Assembly (NCBI GenBank): GCA_002269645.1
Contig: NIVC01002110.1
Coordinates: 62,001-126,000, forward strand
Length of the DNA: 64,000 nt
From: Macrostomum lignano
Taxonomy: Eukaryota
Direction: 5' to 3'
Positions 1 to 53,742 of the stretch are shown here, piece after piece. Below the pieces are notes generated by a model. The model saw nothing but the letters and a program-made list of their open reading frames with translations. It had not been told where the DNA came from and ran no database searches. Both the position numbers and the translations under genes were made by a program. Positions within the stretch are counted from its first letter, which is position 1; the number at the start of each line of letters is the position of its first letter.

Positions 1-693
1 GGTGTTTTATTGTACGATAATACATGTGTAACGCGTAGGCTATGCCTGCTCTTTGTCCCTCGGCTCTGAGACCAAGGGGAGATCAAGAGATAAAACTTCA
101 ACCTGGATCATTTCTAACTTTTTTATTGCTCTAAAAAGACACCTTTTTATGATGTCGGGTCTAAATTTTAATCCCACAGAAATGTAGGACTTGAAGCAGA
201 TCAAGCACTCCATAGTCCTTGTTTCGCGATCTCCTTGATTCTGCACCCTTTTGCCCTGATCTGCTTGCGATATGCACGCGTATTGGGAAGATTATTGTCA
301 TGCTTTAGGCTCTCCTACCCCATATTTAGTTTACCACAATTCCTTTGCTCCGCGGTTGCTTTATAATATAAAGGCCGTGTGCCGTGTCGTGTCCCAGTTT
401 GCTGCTGTCTTGCTACCATCTGTCCTGCTCTGACACACGACCCCTGTGAGAGGGGTGAGCGCTTTGTTGGGTTATGCACATAAAGGACGCTACATTCGAG
501 TTTCTTAGCAATGAGCCCAGAATGCATAGCGCTGAATGGGGTTTGGCCATAGACAAATTCAGTCGAGTAGAAAACCGATTTGTCTAAGTGAAGCATAGCT
601 AAATGCCTCTCTAGGCATCCGGCTTATTTCTAATCAAATTGATTTTAGCGCGTGCTTCTGGTTCATTTGTCTATGGTATCACGTAGGTCAGAG

Positions 694-4105: not shown

Positions 4106-4936
4106 ACAAGAGAATAGATTAGAAGGCCAAGCAGAGGGCAAATAAAATATAAAAGCTGTACCGGCACCGTAGTTTCAATAATATTATTAATATTCAGAGT
4201 GCCTTGTTTATACTAAACGCCCCCTCTCTCAATCCTGGAACGCATATAAAGAAATAAAAACTCAAGCTTTTTACACCCAACGTGACCCAGAAAAGACCTT
4301 GCTCTGTATTAATTAAATAATTAACTGTGCATGTGGGCAGGCAAAATGGCAATGGCATGGCAAGCTATAGAGGGTCGAATTAAAGCTAATTAAGTCCGTA
4401 TTATTATCAACAATATTATTTGTATCGAGTTGAGTGCCAATTATAGCATTCCATGTCACGAATAGCTGTCTTTAATCACAAGTAGAGCGATCTACGAGTA
4501 TGCCATTGGAATCCTATTATAAACCTGTTTAGTTAGAGCTGCTGTTGTTGTTGTTGTCGTGGGTGGCTGGGTTGCGTAATACTTCCTGGGTAAAACAGTC
4601 CTGTTTGGGAGGCAGGCGATTTTGTTTAGTGTTCCGAAGCCACACTGGCAGTTATAGATATGATTACACAGTTCTTCGTTAGTGAGAAGGTCTATGCTGG
4701 GGGATTTAGTGAGTTTAGTGAAGCGTCAAATGCAGCACGGAAGGTGAATATGATGGCCAATGGCTCACTTGGCCAATTTCTGACTCAAAATGGCATTACT
4801 ATACTGGGCTACAATCAACTATAGGAAAGAGTATAATGGGTGAAGGAGTTCACGAAGGATCCACAGTTATAGTTTGAAAGAATACAAAACAAGCCTTGAA
4901 TTTTTTATTCGACATTAAAATATTGTGCTTTTCAGA

Positions 4937-5609: not shown

Positions 5610-7966
5610 ACACGATCTGGTCGACTAGCTTCGACTTTCTTTTCGGTCGACGGTATCCCGCCATCCGATGCCGCCGGAGCGAGCCGGCGCCGAGCCCGTG
5701 GCCGCCGGTGGCACGGGAGTGACAGCCGAGGTGGCCAATTTTGTACTGGCCCTGTGCCTACTGCTCATCCGCTATCCGTCCACATTCTGGCTGTCTAGCC
5801 GACCATTTTCGCTGCTATTCTCCGGCGTCCTGTGCTCTTGCTGCGTTCACGTGATGCTGTCTAGGGAGGCTTCGGCCGTGCTGCTGCGTGTTGGCGTTGT
5901 CGGCGGTTCGACAGACGGCGGCGGCAGCGGCGGCAGCGGCGGCAGCTGCCTGCCAGCAGCTGCGGTGCCCGCTCTGCAGACCCTCAGCGATCTGATGCTG
6001 CTAACGGCTTGTGTGGCCTTCTTCGAGTTTGGCTATGGACGGGTGCGAATTAGGAGAACTGCGGGAGAGTGACTAATAGACTGACTGGGAGAGTGACTGG
6101 GAGAGTCAATGAAAGAGTGACAAGGGAGAGTGACGGATAGAGTGACCAGATGACTGACTGAAATACTGACAGAGAGGGACGGAGAAAGTGACCTGGAAAG
6201 TGACTGGAATAGTGACCAGGAGGGTGACCGGAGAGTGACCGGTAGACTAACTGGGAGAGTGACTGGTAGACTGATCGGTTGAGTGACTGGGAGAGTCACT
6301 GAAAGAGTGACAAGGTAGAGTGACGGAGAGAGTGACTGGGAGAGTGACTGGTACTGGTAGACTGACCGGGAGAGTCACTGAAAGAGTGACAAGGGAGAGT
6401 GACGGAGAGAGTGACCAGGAGGGTGACCGGGAGAATGACTGAGAGAGTGGCTGAAGGAGTGACCGGGAGAGTGACTGAGAGAGTGACCGGAAGAGTGATT
6501 GAGTTGAGCATCAACCCCGCTTCCAGATTCTGTCCAGCCTACGCCAGCTGCGGCCGTATCTGCTGGAGCAGCAGAAGCAGCAACAGCAGCAGCGTCTGCT
6601 GCAATCAAAGCAGCCCGACCACCTGGACTCGGTGTCGAACTGCATCGCCCCAAGCGGCAGCGACTTCTCCACTGGTGGCCCAGCGGCGTCAGAAGCAGCC
6701 GTGGAACCGACCGCCTGCTGTCAGCGAGGCGTCCTGGCCGCCCAGGTGCTCGGCTCGTTGCTCATGCTGGCCTCGGCGGTGATCAAAGCTCCGCTATTCT
6801 GGGACTGGCTGTCTCTGTACAGACAGCGCCAATTGCCCGTGCTTCTAGGAGCTGTGATTTCTGGCGGAGTCTACGCTCTGGTCTGGACCGCAGCCTGGCT
6901 GCTGCTCGGCCTGTGCCGCGGCTCCCCGCTGTGCCGGTTCGACATTCAAATCGAGCTGCAGCAAATGCTGGACGAAGTCGACGACGGACAGCTAGCTGGC
7001 CGGGACGTCGGCGAGGAGGAGCATCTGGGAGATGATGAGGCGGCTGGCGCTGGAGACGGCAATCCCGGCATCGACGGAGGCGCGGCGACGCGGGGCCAGA
7101 GTCATCTGCAGTCGACGTCTGGCTACGTGTACCACCACCTGCACGGCATGGTGCCGACCATCTCGGAGCGGCTGGACTCATCCGCCAGCGAGGACGGCGG
7201 CGCCAGCAGCGCCGATTCTGCCGACAGGATGCGAGCGAGCGGCCTGGTGAAGTACCAGGTTCGGCGAGACTCGGCCGGTGGCAGTTTGAAGCGGAGTCCC
7301 GGCAACGGCGGTCACAACCGGGTGGTCACTTTCAAGGAGGGCTCCGTCGGTGGCGGCTCAGGCGGCGCCGCTGGCGGCGGAGGGCCGACGCTGCCTCAGC
7401 TGTCGTTTCTGGCGTCGACAGCGTCGCCAGCGTCCAGTCAGGTCGGCGGAGCCTCGTCGTCAGATAGCGGCGTGGCGGACTATCAGTTTCATCAGCACCT
7501 GCTGCACCATCAGCAGCATCAGCAGGCGCCGCTATTCTCAGCATTCGGTGGAGGTCACGAGCCCGTGGCCACCTACGCAACTAGAAGTGAAGTCTTCGCT
7601 CCCGCCACGTCGTTTCCGTCGCTGCCGCCGCCTCCGCCGCTGCCTCCGCTATCGTCGCCGCACGCTTTGTCAGTAGCCTCGACGGCTTCAGTGTCAACTC
7701 GGGTGCCGGACATCCTCATGACCAGGTGCGGCCAGTTCCAGCATCAGCAGCTTCAGCAGGGTGCGCACAGCAGCAGTCTGGGCCGCGGCTCTCGGAAGCC
7801 GCCGCTGTCAATTTTCGGCAGGCAGATGAGCGGCTCCGAACTGCTCGAAATGCTGCCCCCGCCGCCTTCGCCTCCACCGCCGCCGCCGCCGCCGACCTCA
7901 ACGAATCAGCAGATGAGTTCCATGATGCTTGACGAGCACGTGGATGGGTTGTGCAGTCAGGTGTGA
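5610..7966 (+). CDS. tinc: Tincar-like multipass membrane protein, 3' part (exons 5610-6042 and 6527-7966; 5' exons not located)
   Basis: Translated motifs IWSTSFDFLF, LLIRYPSTFW, FEFGYGR and KAPLFWDW...VYALVWTAAWLLL resemble tincar-family segments as I recall them. Acceptor cacag|5610; phase-0 donor CGG|gtgcg at 6042/6043; acceptor ttccag|6527 in frame with ORF 6632-7966. A one-base frameshift lies between about 5650 and 5720. Confidence 0.7.
6060..6500. repeat. Degenerate ~10-bp repeat (GAGAGTGACT-like) filling the tincar-like intron
   Basis: gagagtgact/gagagtgacc units between the donor (6043) and acceptor (6526). Confidence 0.9.
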
Positions 7967-8435: not shown

Positions 8436-8847
8436 AGACTTGGATACTACGGGATTTGCCCTGGATATTATTGGACTTCCCATTGAATACGACAGAGTTT
8501 TACATCGATAAAAATTAATTTCTCCTGGATACAAATAAAAATTTTGAGACTAATTGGCTTAAAATATTTGCGACACTTTAATTTGCGTAAAAATGTTTGT
8601 GCACATTATGATTGCAGTCATTAGTTAGTCCTATATAGTGTGATAATTGTACTCAATTATTGCGCACAGCTCATCATATGCGTAGGATAATTAAATTTTA
8701 ATTGCTTTAGTTTTTATTACCAACAGTCTTAACCAAAGTTATTAACAATACCTGCTCACGGCTTTAATCTTTTAAAAATAGCAGAACTTCTTTCATTGTT
8801 GCATAGTAAATATATTCACTTCATGGATCTGCGTGTTTCTCTTCGCA

Positions 8848-37109: not shown

Positions 37110-37730
37110 TTAGCTCCCCATAGATATCTTTAGTTTCCCATAGACATCTGTAGCTTTTCATAGATATCTATAGCTTCCCATAGACATCTATAGCTTTCCA
37201 TAGACATCTGTAGCTCCCCATGGGTATCTATAGCTTCCCATAGATATCTATAGCTCCCCATAGATATCTTTAGCTCCCTATAAACATCTATAGCTTCCCA
37301 TAGACAGCTGTAGCTCCCCATAGACATCTATAGCTTTCCATAGATATCTGTAGCTCCCTATAGACATCTATAGCTTTCCATAGACATCTATAGCTTCCCA
37401 TAGATATCTGTAGCTCCCTATAGACATCTATAGCTTTCCATAGACATCTATAGCTTCCCATAGATATCTTTAGCTCCCTATAGACATCTATAGCTTCCCA
37501 TAGATATCTGTAGCTCCCTATAGACATCTATAGCTTTCCATAGACATCTATAGCTCCCCATAGATATATTTAGCTCACTATAGACATCTATAGCTTCCCG
37601 TAGATATCTTTAGCTCCCTATAGACATTTATAGCTTTCCATAGACATCTATAGATCCCCATGGATATATTTAGCTCCCCATAGACATCTGTGGCTTACCA
37701 TAGACATCTGTAGCTTCCCATAGACATACT
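37110..37730. repeat. 20-bp minisatellite (CATAGACATCTATAGCTTCC), ~30 copies with a 60-bp sub-period
   Basis: Read directly; ends about 175 bp upstream of the SNX ATG. Confidence 0.96.
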
Positions 37731-37904: not shown

Positions 37905-40900
37905 ATGGAAAAATCTAGCGACAACTCCGAGGACGACATCTTTGCCGAGACCAATGAAACTGTTGATGTTGAAGATGTCGATTTGAACAGCAGTGGAGCT
38001 GGCGTCTCAACCCCAGCTGCCACCGCCGCCCCAGCTCCGGCCGCTGAAAAGTTGGAGCCTTCGGCACCTCCCGCCGTCGCCTCGGCACCTCCCGCCGCCG
38101 CCTCGGCACCTCCCGCCGCTGCCTCGGCACCTGCCGCTCCACCAGCTTCAAATTCCAGCTCCGGTGGCCCTAGCAAACTCGAATTGCCGGCCTCGCTAGC
38201 TTTCGAATATCTGCTCACTGTTCGAGTCACTAATCCGGAGAAAATTGGCGATGGAATGGGAGCCTACGTGGCCTACAAGGTGTCGTTCTCCACCACTATA
38301 CCGGCTTTCGGCCGGCCCGAGGGCAGCGTACGGCGAAGGTTCTCCGACTTTCTCGGTTTGTATGAAAAACTGCACGAGAAGTATTTGAGGTAAATTCCTC
38401 TTTTGTCCTGGGCCAGCCTCCCGGATGATCCCAGATCCTCAATTGCTGGACCAGCCTCCCAGATCCTCAATTGCTGGGCCAGCCTCTCAGATCCTCAGTT
38501 GCTGGGCCAGCCTCCCAAATCCTCAGTTGCTGGGCCAGCCTCCCAGATCCTCAGTTTCTGGGCCAGCCTCCCAGATCCTCAGCTGTTGGGCCAGCCTCCC
38601 AGATCCTCAGTTGCTGGGCCAGCCTCCCAGATCCTCAGTTGCTGGGCCAGCCTCTCAGATCCTCAGTTGCTGGGCCAGCCTCCCCGATTCTCAGTTGCTG
38701 GGCCAGCCTCCCAGATCCTCAGTTGCTCGGCTAGCCTCCCAGATCCTCAGCTGTTGGGCCAGCCTCCCAGATCCTCAGTTGCTGGGCCAGCCTCCCAGAT
38801 CCTCAGTTGCTGGGCCAGCCTCTCAGATCCTCAGTTGCTGGGCCAGCCTCCCCGATTCTCAGTTGCTGGGCCAGCCTCCCAGATGATCCCAGATTCTCAG
38901 TTGCTGTGCCAGCCTCCCAGATGATCCCAGATCCTCAGCTGTTGGGCCAGCCTCCCAGATCCTCAGCTGTTGGGCCAGCCTCCCAGATCCTCAGTTGCTG
39001 GGCCAGCCTTAACCAGAGCCGTCTCCCTCAATCATGGCCGATCCCAGGGACGGTTTTGTAATTCCGCCCAAGCCGGAGAAGTCCGTAGTCGGCGCCACGA
39101 AGATCAAGATGTCCAAGGACAGCGTAGACGAGGACCATTTTGTTGAGCGCCGCCGGGCCCAGCTGGAGCGCTTCCTGGTCCGCTGCTCCGACCACCCGGT
39201 GTTGCGGATGGACCCGGATTTCCGCGAATTTCTCGAGCACGACGGCGACCTGCCCAAGTCCAGCGGCACCCGGGCGCTGAGCGGAGCCGGCGTCATGCGT
39301 GTGTTCTCGTCCATTGGCAGCTCGGTGCAACGGATGACCTACAAGATGGACGAGACTGATCAGGTGCGCCTCGATGGGGTTGTTAATTAGTTTCGAGATA
39401 AACCAATAGTATTTGGTCTATGAACTGCTCATTTTCTTCTTTCTGAGCTTCTGAGGATTGAATTAATCTTATATGTCGGCGTGAAATAAAAGATCACAAA
39501 AATCGATTTATTTTTAACCGCCCCCCTCTCTTTCCTCCCTCCACACTTTATTCTTAATATGAATTTTGTCTATGGTTAGAAGCCCCCACACCCCCAGCAG
39601 GGGCTCTGCCCCCGCACCCCCGCTAGCAGCCGCTGTCGAATAGATGGAATACTCTTCAAAAATAATCAGTGAAGGGGGAGAATGGCTCTAATAAGAATGA
39701 AATTCATGAACGCTTACTCGTGCGTCTATGGCAGTCGTGCAGGAATGAAATAATCTATGGCCAAATCTCCACTGTTTTACACATGGACTTCGTGCAGGAA
39801 TGAAATAATCTATGGCCAAATCTCCACTGTTTTACACATGGACTTCGTGCAGGAATGAAATAATCTATGGCCAAATCTCCACTGTTTTACACATGGACTT
39901 CGTGCAGGAATGAAATAATCTATGGCCAAATCTCCACTGTTTTACACATGGACTTCGTGCAGGAATGACACTCTCCGTTCCTGCACGCAAACAATTTATT
40001 TATATGTATTTGATTATTTAGTTGTATTTATTCAATAACCTTAACAAAACTTAACATGAAAAAGACTAATTAGGATTGCAAATATATAAACTGCACCAAA
40101 TAAGACAGCAAGCAAAAATGTAGGGGGGGGGGGGGCTCAACAGCAAAAATGTTGTGTTCGGCAACAAATTAAGGAGTCACACAACCTTACTCAAAAAAGA
40201 ATTCCACTACGTTGCTGGAACCGTTGGCTACTATCCTCATCTTCTTAGCCGGACCGGCAATTCGCAAATCGCAGGCGCCACTCGAAAATTGTTTGGCCGG
40301 TGCCTCAGTTGCGGTTGGATGTTTGTCGCTACAGCCTCCCAGTGCTGGTGGCGCACGACCGGCGAGAGACTCAGTCAGCTGGCTGCTCATCTTGGCAAGA
40401 ATGCTGTCTCTCTTTTTTCCCTGTCTGATGTACCGCTCCACTGAGGCGCTCGCCTGTTTCAAATATTTAAGAAGGATGCAAGAGAGAGTATATAGAAAAA
40501 ATCTTTTAAAGCATTTAATTGTGCGGCTTAAGATAGACAAGAAAATACAGAAATAGCACGTAGAAATTACCTTGTGTCCAGTCACCTTGGCGATAGTCTC
40601 TGTCGAATATCCAGCTTCGTGGAGCTCAGTGACTACAGTGAGTCGAACACAGTGCGCCGTATAGCTTCTCGACAGCCCGGCACTGGAAGATATCCGCTTA
40701 AGCATTGGTCCAAGCGTATTGATTCCGATTGCCTGTTTCGTATACCACAGGCCATTCGAGCCAACCAGCTGCTTCGGTCGCAGAAAAAAGTCCGAACTGT
40801 TCCATCCAGGCACTGCTTCGATCTTCCGCAAATACATGCGAAAGGCTTCAACGGGACACGATTTCTGATCGGACCCGGCCACCATGATTTCTTGCTTTGG

Positions 40901-43900
40901 GTCGTCGCTCTGCCTCAAATCCGTTGATCCATGGACAGTTTTACTGGTTCCAACTTGAAGCACGATGGCCACTCGTCTCTCAGCCAGACGCTTCTCAGAA
41001 AACGACTTTGCAGTCAGTCCTCTGAGCCATTCGCGGCCCCGGTTACCAAAATAATATAGAATACTGAAATACACTTCATCCTGAAGTTTGGTTGGACTGC
41101 TCCGATCGAAGTAGGTGTGCAGTTTAGACAGGTCGTCTGTTTCAATGGCGGAGAAATGATTGATTCTTCCTCCAATACGCAGGAATTCGTTACAGGCATG
41201 TTTCAATGTCAGATTGGCCGAATGGAATTGCGGCAGAGAGATAATGTCCAAAGAGCGAAGCCTTATAAAGTGCCGATAAAGTCCGGCACGCATTCCCAAC
41301 ATTGTGTTGGGTGAATAGGATGAGCCGTCAGGCTTCTTCAGAGCGGCGTAAAAATACGCTCGTAACGAAGAAATTTCGCAAGCTGCTCAGGAGTCACGGT
41401 CTCAAAGTCAAGGTGAATGTTGTTCTCCCGCAAAAAATCTTGAAACCGAAGACACGAAGCTTTCTCCTTGGCAACGCTTGACTCGCACTGATTTTCTCGT
41501 TCCAGCTTAGCGGCCAAGCTTTCAAGTTCATCGATGTTGCACAAAGAATTCGGATCCACAGACATCAGTTCGTCCAAAACTTTGCTTGTAACTCCTTCTT
41601 GCGAACAAGTGAGCTTGGCGATCTCCCGTTCGAATTTGCTGCTTACCGACTCGATAAACGTCTCCTCGGCGGACAATCCACAAACAGTCGCATACTGCAT
41701 GTCGATTAGTGGAGCCGCCAAGTTTGAATTTATTACACTCGCCATTTTTAAAAGCACGAACTTAAAAAGCATTTCTAGAGCTTAACTTCTTCTTCCCAGT
41801 CTAATTTCTTGCGTGCAGGAATGTGTGTTCTTTCTAAGAGTCATTATTGATGGTTCACTTTCCAAGAATCCTTATTAATGGTTCACTTTCCAAGAATCCT
41901 TATTGATGGTCTACTTTCTAAGAATCAGTATTGAGGGCTTACTTTCTAAGAATCATTATTGATGGTTTACTTTCTAAGAATCATTATTGATGGTCTACTT
42001 TCTAAGAAAGAATCATCCGCAATCTTTTCGAAGAAATCGTCAAAAAATCACCCACATTCTCTTTCCAAAGAATTGAATGTCCTTTCAATTTCAAAGAATC
42101 AGTACTGCTTTCTAATTAGACTTGTAAAATTCCCTAGCTAACCCACTCCAACCGGCCCTCCCCCCAACCAGTGGTTCGAAGACAAGAACCAGGAGGTGCA
42201 CCAGCTAGAAGAGCATCTGCGCCGGTTGCACAGCAGCATTGAGGCCCTAGTCAACCACCGGCGGGAGTACGGCTGCATGGCGGAGCAGTTCGCCGGCTCT
42301 GCTAATATGATTTCTAGCGTTGAAGAGAACACTAATCTGTCGTTTGCGTTCACTAAACTGGCGGAGACTGAGGAGCGAGTCGGCAGGCTGCAGATCGAAC
42401 AGGCTGATTCGGACTATTACGGATTAGCCGAATTGCTGCATGACCATTTGGCCATGCTTGAGTCTGTTCGAGCCAGCCTGTACGAACGAGTTCGAGCCTA
42501 TAAAACTTGGAAAGACGCCGAAATGGCGTTGACTAAGAAACGCGAAGAGAAAGTGCGGAATGAACTTGGCGGCAAGGCTGACAAAGCGGCCGCTTGCGAG
42601 GCTGCTACTAGAGAATTGGAAGGCCAGGTGTGTTTTTGGGAGCTAGTAACAAATTTTAGAGCAGTGGTAAGGACTGGTTTTAGTTGTAGATTTTGAAGAG
42701 AGAAGGTAGGATGTTGAGAGAGTAGGTAGATAGATTGTGACGGAAGTAGGTAGTGTTGAGGATAAGGTAGAGTGAAAAGAGCAGGTAGAGTGTGAAGAGA
42801 GTAGGTAGTGTAAAGCGAGTAGGTAGAGAGTGAAGAGAGCAGGTAGAGAGTAAAAAGAGTAGGTATAGAGTGAAGAGAGTAGGTAGTGTGAAGAGAGCAG
42901 GTAGAGAGTGAAGAGAGCAGGTAGAGAGTGAAGAGGGTAGGTAGTGTGAAGAGAGCAGGTAGAGAGTGAAGAGGGTAGGTAGTGTGAAGAGAGCAGGTAG
43001 AGAGTGAAGAGGGTAGGTAGTGTGAAGAGAGCAGGTAGAGAGTGAAGAGGGTAGGTAGTGTGAAGAGAGTAGGTAGTGTGAAGAGAGCAGGTAGAGAGTG
43101 AAGAGGGTAGGTAGTGTGAAGAGAGCAGGTAGAGAGTGAAGAGGGTAGGTAGTGTGAAGAGAGCAGGTAGAGAGTGAAGAGGGTAGGTAGAGAGTGAAGA
43201 GAGCAGGTAGAGAGTGAAGAGGGTAGGTAGAGAGTGAAGAGAGCAGGTAGAGAGTGAAGAGAGCAGGTAGAGAGTGAAGAGAGCAGGTAGAGAGTGAAGA
43301 GAGCAGGTAGAGAGTGAAGAGAGCAGGTAGAGAGTGAAGAGAGCAGGTAGAGAGTGAAGAGAGCAGGTAGAGAGTGAAGAGAGCAGGTAGAGACTGAAGA
43401 GAGCAGGTAGAGAGTGAAGAGAGCAGGTAGAGAGTGAAGAGAGCAGGTAGAGAGTGAAGAGAGCAGGTAGAGAGTGAAGAGAGCAGGTATAGAGTGAAGA
43501 GAGCAGGTAGAGAGTGAAGAGAGCAGGTAGAGACTGAAGAGAGCAGGTAGAGAGTGAAGAGAGCAGGTAGAGACTGAAGAGAGCAGGTAGAGACTGAAGA
43601 GAGCAGGTAGAGACTGAAGAGAGCAGGTAGAGACTGAAGAGAGCAGGTAGAGGTGAATGGGATTAGAATAGGGAACGACAAATGTACTTACGTTCACCAA
43701 CCCAGCCATCAATGCCCCTCTAAATATGGTTAAGGTGGAACGCGGCCAAGAGGCATTTGACAAGATCTCTGCCACGGTGCGTAGCGAACTTGAGCGCTAC
43801 GATCTCCGGCGTGGCTACGAGCTGAAGACGGCAATCGTGGCGAGTCTGGAGCACCAGCTGCGGCAGCAGCAGTGCGTACTGGAGGCCTGGGAGGCCTACC

Positions 43901-43932
43901 TACCCGAGGCTAAACGGATTCTAGCCGCTTAA
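37905..43932 (+). CDS. SNX1/2: Sorting nexin 1/2 (PX-BAR, Vps5 family), 484 aa; exons 37905-38389, 39048-39363, 42172-42627, 43735-43932
   Basis: PX motifs [61 protein letters not shown]; BAR segment WFEDK...LVNHRREY...KLAETEE...WEAYLPEAK. All introns are GT-AG with consistent phases; total 1455 nt. Confidence 0.96.
38406..39009. repeat. 28-bp minisatellite filling SNX intron 1
   Basis: Unit CTGGGCCAGCCTCCCAGATCCTCAGTTG, ~21 copies. Confidence 0.97.
39736..39967. repeat. 55-bp tandem repeat (4 full copies plus a partial) carrying the CGTGCAGGAATG arm
   Basis: Copies start at 39736, 39791, 39846, 39901 and 39956. Confidence 0.97.
39976..41823 (-). mobile_element. Crypton-like tyrosine-recombinase DNA transposon inside SNX intron 2
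   Basis: YR gene on the minus strand between inverted 15-bp arms CGTTCCTGCACGCAA (39976-39990) and TTGCGTGCAGGAATG (41809-41823), one mismatch. The ends are inferred from these arms. Confidence 0.8.
40187..41745 (-). CDS. Tyrosine recombinase, CryptonA/DUF3504(KCTD1/ZMYM)-like, ~478 aa; one intron (40454-40570) and one frameshift near 41360
   Basis: ATG at 41745. LAKFLR/[frameshift]/[30 protein letters not shown]; catalytic set GNRGRE (R), SKT (K), HCVR (HxxR), TGHK (H), ERY (Y); [10 protein letters not shown] and [15 protein letters not shown] motifs; intron GHK|gtaatt...aacag|ASASVERY. Confidence 0.9.
41840..42005. repeat. 28-bp minisatellite abutting the right end of the Crypton-like element
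   Basis: Unit TCATTATTGATGGTTCACTTTCCAAGAA with variants, ~6 copies. Confidence 0.9.
42700..43651. repeat. 20-bp purine-rich minisatellite filling SNX intron 3
   Basis: Unit GAGCAGGTAGAGAGTGAAGA; 38-bp (20+18) higher-order block in the 5' half. Confidence 0.97.
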
Positions 43933-44078: not shown

Positions 44079-44445
44079 ATTTTCCAAGCCAATTGAGCCC
44101 TAGGAAGCAAGCAATTTAATCCCTAGTTGGGAGAATCAGGCTATTGTAGGCTGGCTTTTCATTGTCTATGGCCCAACTGGGGGTCTGTGGCGCAAATAAT
44201 TCCTTAGTTTGGTCCTTAGAATCAGGCTATTGTAGATTGGCTTTTTATTGTCTATGGTCCAACCTGGTCCTTAGAATGAAGCTATTGTAGACTGGCATTT
44301 CATTGTCTATGGTCCAAGCTGGTCCTTAGAATGAAGCTATTGTAGACTGGCTTTTCATTGTCTATGGTCCCACCTGGTCTTTAGAATGAAGCTATAGAGA
44401 TTTAAATTCAATCTGTCCCCTAGGGGTCAAATTGGCTTGGAAAAT
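44079..44445. mobile_element. MITE-like element with an internal 55-bp tandem repeat
   Basis: Inverted ends ATTTTCCAAGCCAATT / AATTGGCTTGGAAAAT, extending imperfectly to CCCTAGG; interior 55-bp repeat ~4 copies; no TSD seen. Confidence 0.6.
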
Positions 44446-53467: not shown

Positions 53468-53742
53468 ATAAGTGACACCCCCAATCAGTATGATGACCCA
53501 ATCAGTATGACACCCCAATCAGTATGATGACCCAATCAGTATGACACCCCCAATCAGTATGATGACCCAATCAGTATGACACCCCAATCAGTGACACCCC
53601 AATCAGTATGATGACCCAATCAGTATGACACCCTAATCAGTATGACACCCCAATCAGTATGACACCCCAATCAGTATGACACCCTAATCAGTATGACACC
53701 CCAATCAGTATGACACCCCAATCAGTATGACACCCAATCAGT
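53468..53742. repeat. 17-bp minisatellite (ACACCCCAATCAGTATG)
   Basis: Read directly. Confidence 0.93.

Follow-up and report, generated by a model that had tools for sequence, protein, structure and literature searches.

A defective Crypton with site-like repeats in a flatworm sorting-nexin intron, and a possible trace of a circular intermediate

Introduction

The 64-kb stretch of DNA analysed here (contig NIVC01002110.1, positions 62,001–126,000; hereafter the window) carries a gene for a tyrosine recombinase that lies antisense inside an intron of a sorting-nexin gene, an SNX1/2 homologue. An initial annotation had read this gene and its surroundings as a compact Crypton-like transposon of 1.85 kb—near-autonomous, and bounded by 15-bp inverted arms. 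Judged from its sequence and from that of relatives in Macrostomum lignano, the window element is a real, defective Crypton, a new flatworm member of this class with unusually legible site-like repeats. Among the classes of eukaryotic DNA transposons, Cryptons are the one least understood; their ends usually cannot be defined, and we know of no experimental demonstration that they transpose.

Results

A recombinase gene broken by an 8-nt insertion

The recombinase gene occupies the minus strand (Table 1) and is divided between two frames: a 135-codon frame opens at the ATG (41745) and stops at 41338–41340, and a second frame encodes the remainder, down to the stop codon at 40187–40189. Alignment to the full-length M. 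lignano homologues P0001 and P0002 places the switch between ...AKFLRY and FYAALKK.... At the nucleotide level, three homologous loci (L001, L002, and L003) read CG(N)-TAC-TT(Y)-TAT/TTC-GC at this site, without the 8 nt that the window copy has inserted after codon 128, between the RY and FYAAL codons (GAGCGTAT, 41361–41354, or equally TACGAGCG, 41364–41357). A homopolymer error was considered as the cause and rejected, as lengthening the T5 run at 41350–41354 to T6 restores the frame but adds YER, and the three homologues show a clean 8-nt insertion. By this comparison the frameshift is genuine and no homopolymer miscall. Once the 8 nt and the intron are taken out, the conceptual product has 477 aa; the intact open reading frame (ORF) of ~478 aa described initially was reached because the insertion had been silently bridged, and its length is thus conceptual. 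The single intron proposed in the same annotation stands: its 117 nt (40570–40454, GT..AG, phase 0) follow immediately after the GHK codons, and in L001 the annotated M. lignano gene is interrupted at the identical codon boundary by an intron of 76 nt (L001 6171–6246), so that homology confirms it.

The conceptual protein holds the complete R-K-HxxR-H-Y set that had been noted—R233 (in RGRE), K266 (in SKT), H362-x-x-R365, H388, and Y397—and these residues are invariant in a five-sequence family alignment. Pfam assigns it to DUF3504 (PF12012; 37.6 bits vs. a cut-off of 29.7) and Phage_integrase (PF00589; 33.4 bits vs. 27.1) and to no further domain; P0001 carries the same two. The initial reading as an element of Crypton type, with a DUF3504-lineage tyrosine recombinase as its sole coded protein, is supported. 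A family profile searched against the PDB has XerA, Tn1549 Int, IntI4, and human QRICH1 (9hjt) among its matches, and aligns the segment tAHCVR...GHk..SVerY to the box II H-x-x-R...H...Y of XerA (5hxy). Foldseek, run on an AlphaFold model built from the five-sequence alignment, ranks Cre, QRICH1, XerA, XerH, and Tn1549 Int at the top (~320–350 columns, E = 6e-8 and weaker), the model itself being of low quality (predicted local distance difference test [pLDDT] 55, template-modelling [TM] score 0.2–0.4). These matches identify the protein as a tyrosine recombinase that is Cre-like and of DUF3504/CryptonA type. Since the frameshift lies upstream of every catalytic residue, truncating the protein at about 136 aa, before the catalytic domain, the window copy is unable to make this enzyme; near-autonomy, as initially proposed, is thereby lost, and the copy could be mobile only in trans.

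Intact relatives with sharp ends in Macrostomum lignano

Among 5.8 billion proteins the sole close ones are M. lignano P0001 (506 aa) and P0002 (501 aa), at 53–60% identity over their full length; a handful of environmental contigs of element size also match. No relative above 60% identity emerged from word-indexed protein searches, no protein on record equals the 371-aa ORF of the window exactly, and no second copy of the element was found elsewhere in the window. A profile search without a word index opened onto a wider family of 11121 clusters at E <= 1e-3, the nearest of which come from M. lignano, Logan contigs of 1.8–2.7 kb, and Branchiostoma. The P0001 cluster has 14 members on separate contigs and the P0002 cluster 4.

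We compared eight M. lignano loci, which represent seven independent insertions (L007 and L008 duplicate each other). Family 1 (L001, L007/L008, L009, and L010) shares 99.4–99.6% identity over 1970–2018 nt between unrelated flanks. All of its copies stop sharply at ...CTGTGGTCAAACGACAATG, beyond which the flanks have nothing in common, and three independent insertions start with TAATATTCCTGCACG..., the flank before being CAATG, GAATG, or CACTG. Family 2 (L002, L011, and L012) shares 99.2–99.6% identity over ~1.75–1.99 kb, starts with TTAGGATTCTTGAACGC, and ends with ...AGAATCAAATAAGAATG; here the left flanks end in GATTG, CAATG, or GAATG. Across both families, the left-flank 5-mer matches the (C/G)AATG at the 3' terminus of the element, exactly or with one mismatch, in 6/6 long-form junctions. 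The units measure 1.9–2.1 kb and have one gene each; no reverse transcriptase (RT), RNase H, or methyltransferase ORF was found in the complete M. lignano units or in the window locus (39000–43000), where the only ORFs with homology are the recombinase and the SNX exons. Families 1 and 2 are young dispersed transposons bordered by a 4–6 bp (C/G)AATG direct repeat.

Further observations concern the same loci. Some M. lignano gene models fuse the recombinase to unrelated domains (P0146, 2114 aa, CCHC-type; P0145, 759 aa, ankyrin/caspase), and were probably mis-joined across insertions. One member of each family (PAA56097 and PAA56100) is recorded on the same 117-kb contig, NIVC01002664.1. Repeats common to the window and the M. 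lignano loci are 82–90% identical; in addition, window positions 521–567 and 53471–53738 match L002 2554–2600 (with CCATAGACAAATTC) and 8546–8833 at 69–85% identity. At these identities the window is macrostomid-like but does not coincide with the M. lignano sequences sampled.

The inverted arms are internal members of an iterated motif

The inverted arms around the window gene (39978–39996 and 41803–41821) match at 17/19 positions with a perfect 12-mer core, TGCGTGCAGGAA; the left one follows the stop codon by 190 nt, and the right one precedes the ATG by 58 nt. Matches to the 12-mer with at most one mismatch number 6 in 64 kb, where 0.15 would be expected, and since 6/6 fall in this locus the arms are no chance pairing. 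However, they are not a unique terminal pair: five more copies of the motif lie directly outside the left coordinate given initially (39976), and 4/6 matches belong to a 55-bp tandem array (39735–39968), so that a boundary at this coordinate excludes an array built of the arm's own motif. The arms as initially described are thus real and non-random, but neither unique nor terminal. We write A' for (C)ATTCCTGCACG and A for its reverse complement. The left arm and the next A' form a palindrome in the window (DNA fold -11.5 kcal/mol, z = -4.8) that is homologous to one in L001 (6726–6757), with a stem of 10 bp in the window vs. a perfect 14 bp in L001. The 55-mer corresponds to a 54-nt A'-to-A' segment of L001 (6745–6799), and the array is, on this alignment, an amplified form of that 3' subterminal segment of the M. 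lignano element.

TABLE 1. Positions of the recombinase gene, its flanking repeats, and the adjacent host exons in the window.
Feature	Position	Strand	Basis
SNX1/2 exon upstream of host intron (ends ...DETDQ; donor GT at 39364)	39053–39363	+	Alignment to transcript-derived protein
Homologue of canonical 5' non-coding region (GCCATAGACGCACGAGT..GCGTTCATGAAT..CATTCTTATT...CCATAGACAAAATTCAT), here downstream of gene; homology stops where gene-proximal A' would begin	39559–39733	-	Matches to L002, colinear alignment
55-bp tandem array, 4.3 copies, 100% identical; unit A' + CCATAGAT	39735–39968	-	Repeat search, comparison with M. lignano loci
Inverted motif copy A (TGCGTGCAGGAA), initially the left arm; internal; hairpin-capable palindrome with next A' (39955–39968)	39978–39989	-	Repeat search, fold
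AATAAA poly(A) signal directly ahead of 3' motif; order AATAAATTGTT..CGTGCAGGAA kept in L001	39995–40000	-	Sequence reading
Last coding exon (ASASVERY...NVVEFFFE + stop), holds catalytic Tyr	40187–40453	-	Translation, alignment
Intron, 117 nt, GT..AG, phase 0	40454–40570	-	Same position as L001 intron
Recombinase coding sequence past frameshift (FYAALKK...VTGHK); Arg-I (NRGRE), Lys (SKT), HxxR (HCVR), GH histidine	40571–41353	-	Alignment; Pfam
8-nt insertion GAGCGTAT, placement ambiguous by 3 nt (TACGAGCG, 41357–41364)	41354–41361	-	Comparison with L001, L002, L003
Recombinase coding sequence, codons 1–128 (MASVINS...AKFLRY), before frameshift	41362–41745	-	ORF/translation; full-length alignment to P0001/P0002
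Gene-proximal motif CATTCCTGCACG (A'), initially the right arm; 77 nt before ATG (L001: 86 nt); probable 5' junction	41812–41823	-	Homology to canonical copies starts here
28-bp tandem array adjoining 5' junction; most likely host intron sequence	41830–42008		No significant similarity to other flank or relatives' 5' regions
SNX1/2 exon downstream of host intron (starts WFEDKNQ; acceptor AG 42170–42171)	42172–42630	+	Alignment to transcript-derived protein

The relatives with mapped ends show where such arms belong. In L001 the arm motif likewise flanks the gene in inverted orientation (TCATTCCTGCACGGTTT, 4914–4930; AAATCGTGCAGGAATGA, 6724–6740), and both copies are internal: the 5' one lies 25 nt inside the X repeat (4889; defined below) and ~130 nt inside the long-form start, and the 3' one lies 118 nt from the 3' end (6858). 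Thus, in the two closest families, copies of >99% identity have boundaries that do not coincide with the arms, which removes the basis for a 1.85-kb element ended by them.

A conserved set of non-coding modules

Common to all three families (i.e., families 1 and 2 and that of the window) are a copy of CATTCCTGCACG that precedes the ATG by ~80 nt, another in inverted orientation just past the poly(A) signal, 2–5 direct copies beyond that, a CCATAGAC box, and a 5' hairpin region. In L001 and L002 the modules run, up to the gene: start – A' – hairpin – CCATAGAC – degenerate A – X – CCATAGAC – A' – ~80 nt – gene; and, beyond it: gene – AATAAA – (A) – A' – CCATAGAC – A' – A' – X' – AATG end. The 5' region of L001 (~100 nt) folds as a long hairpin (-41 kcal/mol, z = -10.5). 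X and X' form an inverted pair of 17–19 bp whose sequence varies between families 1 and 2 and is complementary within each (CATTGTCTTTTGACCATAG vs. CATTCTTATTTGATTCT), a co-variation that suggests functional constraint.

In L007/L008 (2750–2890) the usual 5' hairpin region is gone, and the conserved body opens at CAATG followed by TCTTTTGACC, inside X, after a diverged, motif-rich 5' region; this copy looks like a recombinant between subfamilies joined at X, and the junction hints that X itself is a crossover site. The left flank of L002 (4776–4786) reads GGCCATAGATTG up to the element, nearly the same as the end of the window 55-mer (GGCCATAGATTA/TTTCATTCC; here and below a slash marks a junction), which suggests that the target of the L002 insertion was the terminal site of a relative akin to the window family.

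The CCATAGAC box also occurs more widely. As (G)CCATAGAC this 8–9-mer is strongly over-represented: exact GCCATAGAC is present 6 times, whereas 64 kb read on both strands should hold a random 9-mer ~0.5 times. Its sites lie at window positions 546, 14255, 37137–37725, 39568–39926, 44164–44368, 46759, and 59801, and throughout L001 and L002; it often follows ttgGG and sits in several unrelated-looking satellites or repeats of the window and of the M. lignano loci. Candidate roles are those of a shared box for recombinase or target, or of a promoter element specific to the lineage. A second 55-bp satellite (44081–44395, 3.4 copies), just past the SNX stop codon, carries CCATAGACAATG in its unit (i.e., the CCATAGAC box fused to CAATG) and is 83–90% identical to an inverted repeat pair in L001 (947–1025 and 1491–1608); this satellite may represent a non-autonomous relative or else a favoured target. 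When metagenomes were scanned for CCATAGAY-N4-8-ATTCCTGCACG, 61 loci came up, none encoding a recombinase homologue, i.e., chance or unrelated microbial matches.

Module order and boundaries of the window copy

The window copy holds the same modules in another order. Read in the orientation of the gene, it runs: 28-bp array – A' (41821) – gene – AATAAA – A (39987) – A' (39965) – four repeats of CCATAGAT – A'; and then, continuing into a region of 5' type: CCATAGAC (39731) – A-like (39712) – X-like CATTCTTATT – CCATAGAC (39575) with AAAATTCAT, where homology ends. Window 39733–39680 matches L002 4858–4911 (85% over 54 nt, E = 3e-12) and L001 4855–4901 (77%), both of which lie upstream of the gene in their own loci, and window 39581–39556 matches L002 4964–4989 (85% over 26 nt). 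Element-derived sequence accordingly runs at least 420 nt past the left arm. The displaced 5' region stops at CCATAGACAAAATTCA(T), and the sequence before the gene resumes at (CA)TTCCTGCACG; joining both breakpoints recreates CCATAGACAAAATTCATTCCTGCACG, where L003 reads CCATAGACAAAATCATTCCTGCACG and L001 reads CCATAGACAAAGTCATTCCTGCACG. The unit between them (39559–41823) measures 2265 bp, or ~2085 bp when counted with a single 55-mer, vs. 2073 bp for the long form of L001.

We put at even chances that a single rotation of the canonical unit as a circle, with the break between CCATAGACAAAATTCA and TTCCTGCACG, accounts exactly for this order. The copy most likely spans about 39559–41823, a boundary call made from a single copy. 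Whether the order is read as a permutation or as the remnant of a dimer (see Discussion), the alignments make the left arm internal and the element longer than 1.85 kb. An extension of the distal-copy homology past CCATAGACAAAAT into the 5' untranslated region was also tried; it was not significant (77/500 shuffles).

The host gene and its introns

The host SNX1/2 gene runs on the plus strand, and its element-bearing intron spans 39364–42171 (GT donor, AG acceptor). A protein derived from a Logan transcript (SRR30276804), 92% identical to SNX, aligns to 38169–38390, 39053–39363, 42172–42630, and 43735–43929 and is continuous over this intron (from ...DE(S/T)DQ to WFEDKNQ...), in agreement with the antisense, intronic position reported initially. 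The window copy is a dead intronic passenger without obvious effect on the SNX gene. The neighbouring SNX introns consist mostly of tandem arrays (28 bp × 18.5 at 38500–39009; 20 bp × 45 at 42769–43657), with spurious long ORFs on both strands. The possibility that the 28-bp array next to the 5' junction and the sequence past the 3' junction are halves of one split host repeat was rejected, their local alignment being beaten or equalled by 1193/2000 shuffles. By eye, the 28-bp unit resembles the X' repeat at ~10/12 positions, which was judged too weak and not used.

Discussion

Nature of the element

The element is almost certainly a Crypton-class tyrosine-recombinase DNA transposon of macrostomid flatworms. 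Tyrosine recombinases and unusual repeats also occur in DIRS/Ngaro-type retrotransposons, yet it is scarcely conceivable that the locus holds a fragment of one: the RT, RNase H, and methyltransferase ORFs are missing from the window locus and from complete 1.9–2.1 kb units in M. lignano, and the gene has a spliceosomal intron, normally absent from a retrotransposed copy. It is also highly improbable that a domesticated, host-serving DUF3504 gene, like KCTD1, ZMYM, or QRICH1, is nested in the SNX intron. The DUF3504 match would fit such a gene, and intronic Crypton-derived ORFs under selection are known, e.g., avian ATF7IP (PMC3212892); on the contrary, the catalytic residues are kept, no host domains have been added, the frame is broken, and the relatives are multicopy, near-identical, and dispersed, with recombination-site-like repeats retained.

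As for the extent of the element, a compact, near-autonomous unit of 1.85 kb ending at the 15-bp inverted arms (39976–41823) is very unlikely. The arms are non-random and keep their position relative to the gene, and the right one comes within 2 nt of where homology to the relatives begins. Yet their homologues are internal in the two families with mapped ends, element-derived sequence extends >420 nt beyond the left arm, and the ORF is frameshifted. Moreover, two full sites in inverted orientation lead tyrosine recombinases to invert the segment between them rather than excise it, which makes inverted arms poor candidates for excision ends; by analogy, better candidates are the A' copies in direct repeat and the AATG cores.

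A possible circular intermediate or a collapsed dimer

A circle model of Crypton transposition reportedly goes back to Goodwin et al. in 2003. By analogy with prokaryotic tyrosine recombinases and with the Goodwin/Kojima Crypton model, the recombinase would bind the 12-bp motifs and synapse the ends; strand exchange at a short core would free a circle, which would re-integrate at short matching genomic sites. The window copy would then derive from a circle that integrated through the gene-proximal CCATAGAC...A' site and not the usual AATG core, and the predicted circle junctions are ...GGCCATAGATTA/TTTCATTCCTGCACG... and ...CCATAGACAAAATTCATTCCTGCACGC.... One such integration would explain both breakpoints by a single event. 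For the locus as a whole we regard a defective Crypton copy, antisense in the SNX1/2 intron, as likely, with a permuted unit from circle integration as the most economical account of its origin. More tentatively, and at less than even chances, we propose the following in full: a circular Crypton intermediate left the window copy as its fossil, having re-integrated at a secondary site as precisely one permuted unit; the recombinase would bind and cross over at the CATTCCTGCACG iterons, at the CCATAGAC box, and at X/X' with their co-variation; and mapped ends and candidate att-like sites would thereby be at hand, for the first time, in an animal Crypton lineage.

The same order of modules could also have arisen from a canonical copy followed by the 5' fragment of a second one, either as a head-to-tail dimer or through insertion beside the recombination site of a copy already in place; the first 5' region and the second body would have been lost later. 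The downstream 5'-region homologue resembles the start of a second unit equally well, and M. lignano elements do abut remnants of relatives (the 5' flank of L007/L008 is filled with motifs, and the GGCCATAGATTG of the L002 left flank is like the window 55-mer). This origin nevertheless requires that two truncations, independent of each other, fell on one and the same nucleotide of the motif, shows no X'/AATG terminus between the array and the 5' region, and has no counterpart among the sampled M. lignano loci (0/8, from seven independent insertions, are dimers); we hold it to be rather unlikely. Several points also weigh against the circular origin and the assignment on which it builds. The ends of the window copy are drawn from one copy, from relatives of 53–60% identity, and from short non-coding matches; the second anchor contains CCATAGACAAA, which is found 4 times in the window; and the proposed junctions share only CAT (3 nt) vs. 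4–6 nt in the M. lignano relatives. In addition, the structure model is poor, and the probable CryptonA membership derives from Pfam and PDB profile matches.

The value of the window copy is that it may be a natural record of a circular intermediate; if it is indeed a circle fossil, the 20-year-old circle model of Crypton transposition becomes directly testable. Near-identical intact copies sit in M. lignano, a model capable of transgenesis, and their sharp ends with the AATG repeat, together with the iterated 12-bp motif, give excision assays, whether biochemical or in vivo, definite substrates in an animal that is easy to work with.

Comparison with known systems

Searches of the literature for Macrostomum Cryptons or for the CCATAGAC motif returned nothing relevant, and no recombinase binding site was found reported in the Crypton literature that we examined. 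The suggestion that this is an undescribed family thus agrees with the searchable literature, in which the flatworm lineage was not found. Short terminal direct repeats have been described for fungal and oomycete Cryptons (PMC3212892), whereas in animal Cryptons the same study found no terminal repeats, and Platyhelminthes are absent from the phyla that it lists (Kojima and Jurka, 2011; PMC3212892).

The domesticated genes KCTD1, KIAA1958, ZMYM2-4, QRICH1, and WOC share the ancestral domain, and QRICH1 (9hjt) ranks near the top by both sequence and fold; unlike the flatworm element, these genes no longer have the catalytic residues, have acquired domains from the host, and exist as single copies in conserved synteny. 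With Cre/loxP, XerA/XerH, and Tn1549 Int the flatworm element would share a two-domain fold, going by the low-quality model, and has in common the R-K-H-R-H-Y set and 11–13 bp elements as an inverted pair (A–spacer–A' after the poly(A) signal), and a circular intermediate would be expected by analogy. It differs from them in sequence (14–18% identity), in the spacer of its palindrome (12 nt in the window vs. 6–8 nt in classical sites), and in that the AATG core of the M. lignano relatives lies between direct, not inverted, motif copies.

Within the Cryptons, CryptonF and CryptonS (fungi, oomycetes, and diatoms) likewise have 4–6 bp terminal direct repeats as the presumed crossover substrate—TATGG in CryptonS, (C/G)AATG in the M. 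lignano relatives—though the host group and the core are different and the flatworm protein has neither GCR1_C nor the conserved CryptonS C-terminus. The closest relatives are the P0001 and P0002 clusters (BOX15_Mlig005367g* and BOX15_Mlig018289g*), which resemble the window family over the full protein, including the N- and C-termini, in the non-coding modules and the motif, and, for the Mlig005367 family, in the position of the intron. They are intact and AATG-bounded, in contrast to the window copy, which is frameshifted, carries the 4.3-unit 55-bp array, and appears permuted, and they are too diverged from the window family to align outside short non-coding blocks. Finally, the flatworm lineage conforms to CryptonA and other animal Cryptons in its single DUF3504-related recombinase ORF with an intron, the lack of RT and of a C-terminal GCR1_C, its size of ~2 kb, and its dispersed copies; what sets it apart is the conserved 12-bp motif, in inverted and iterated direct copies, the ~100-nt 5' hairpin, the co-varying 17–19 bp X/X' pair, and, in the M. 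lignano relatives, the 4–6 bp (C/G)AATG repeat.

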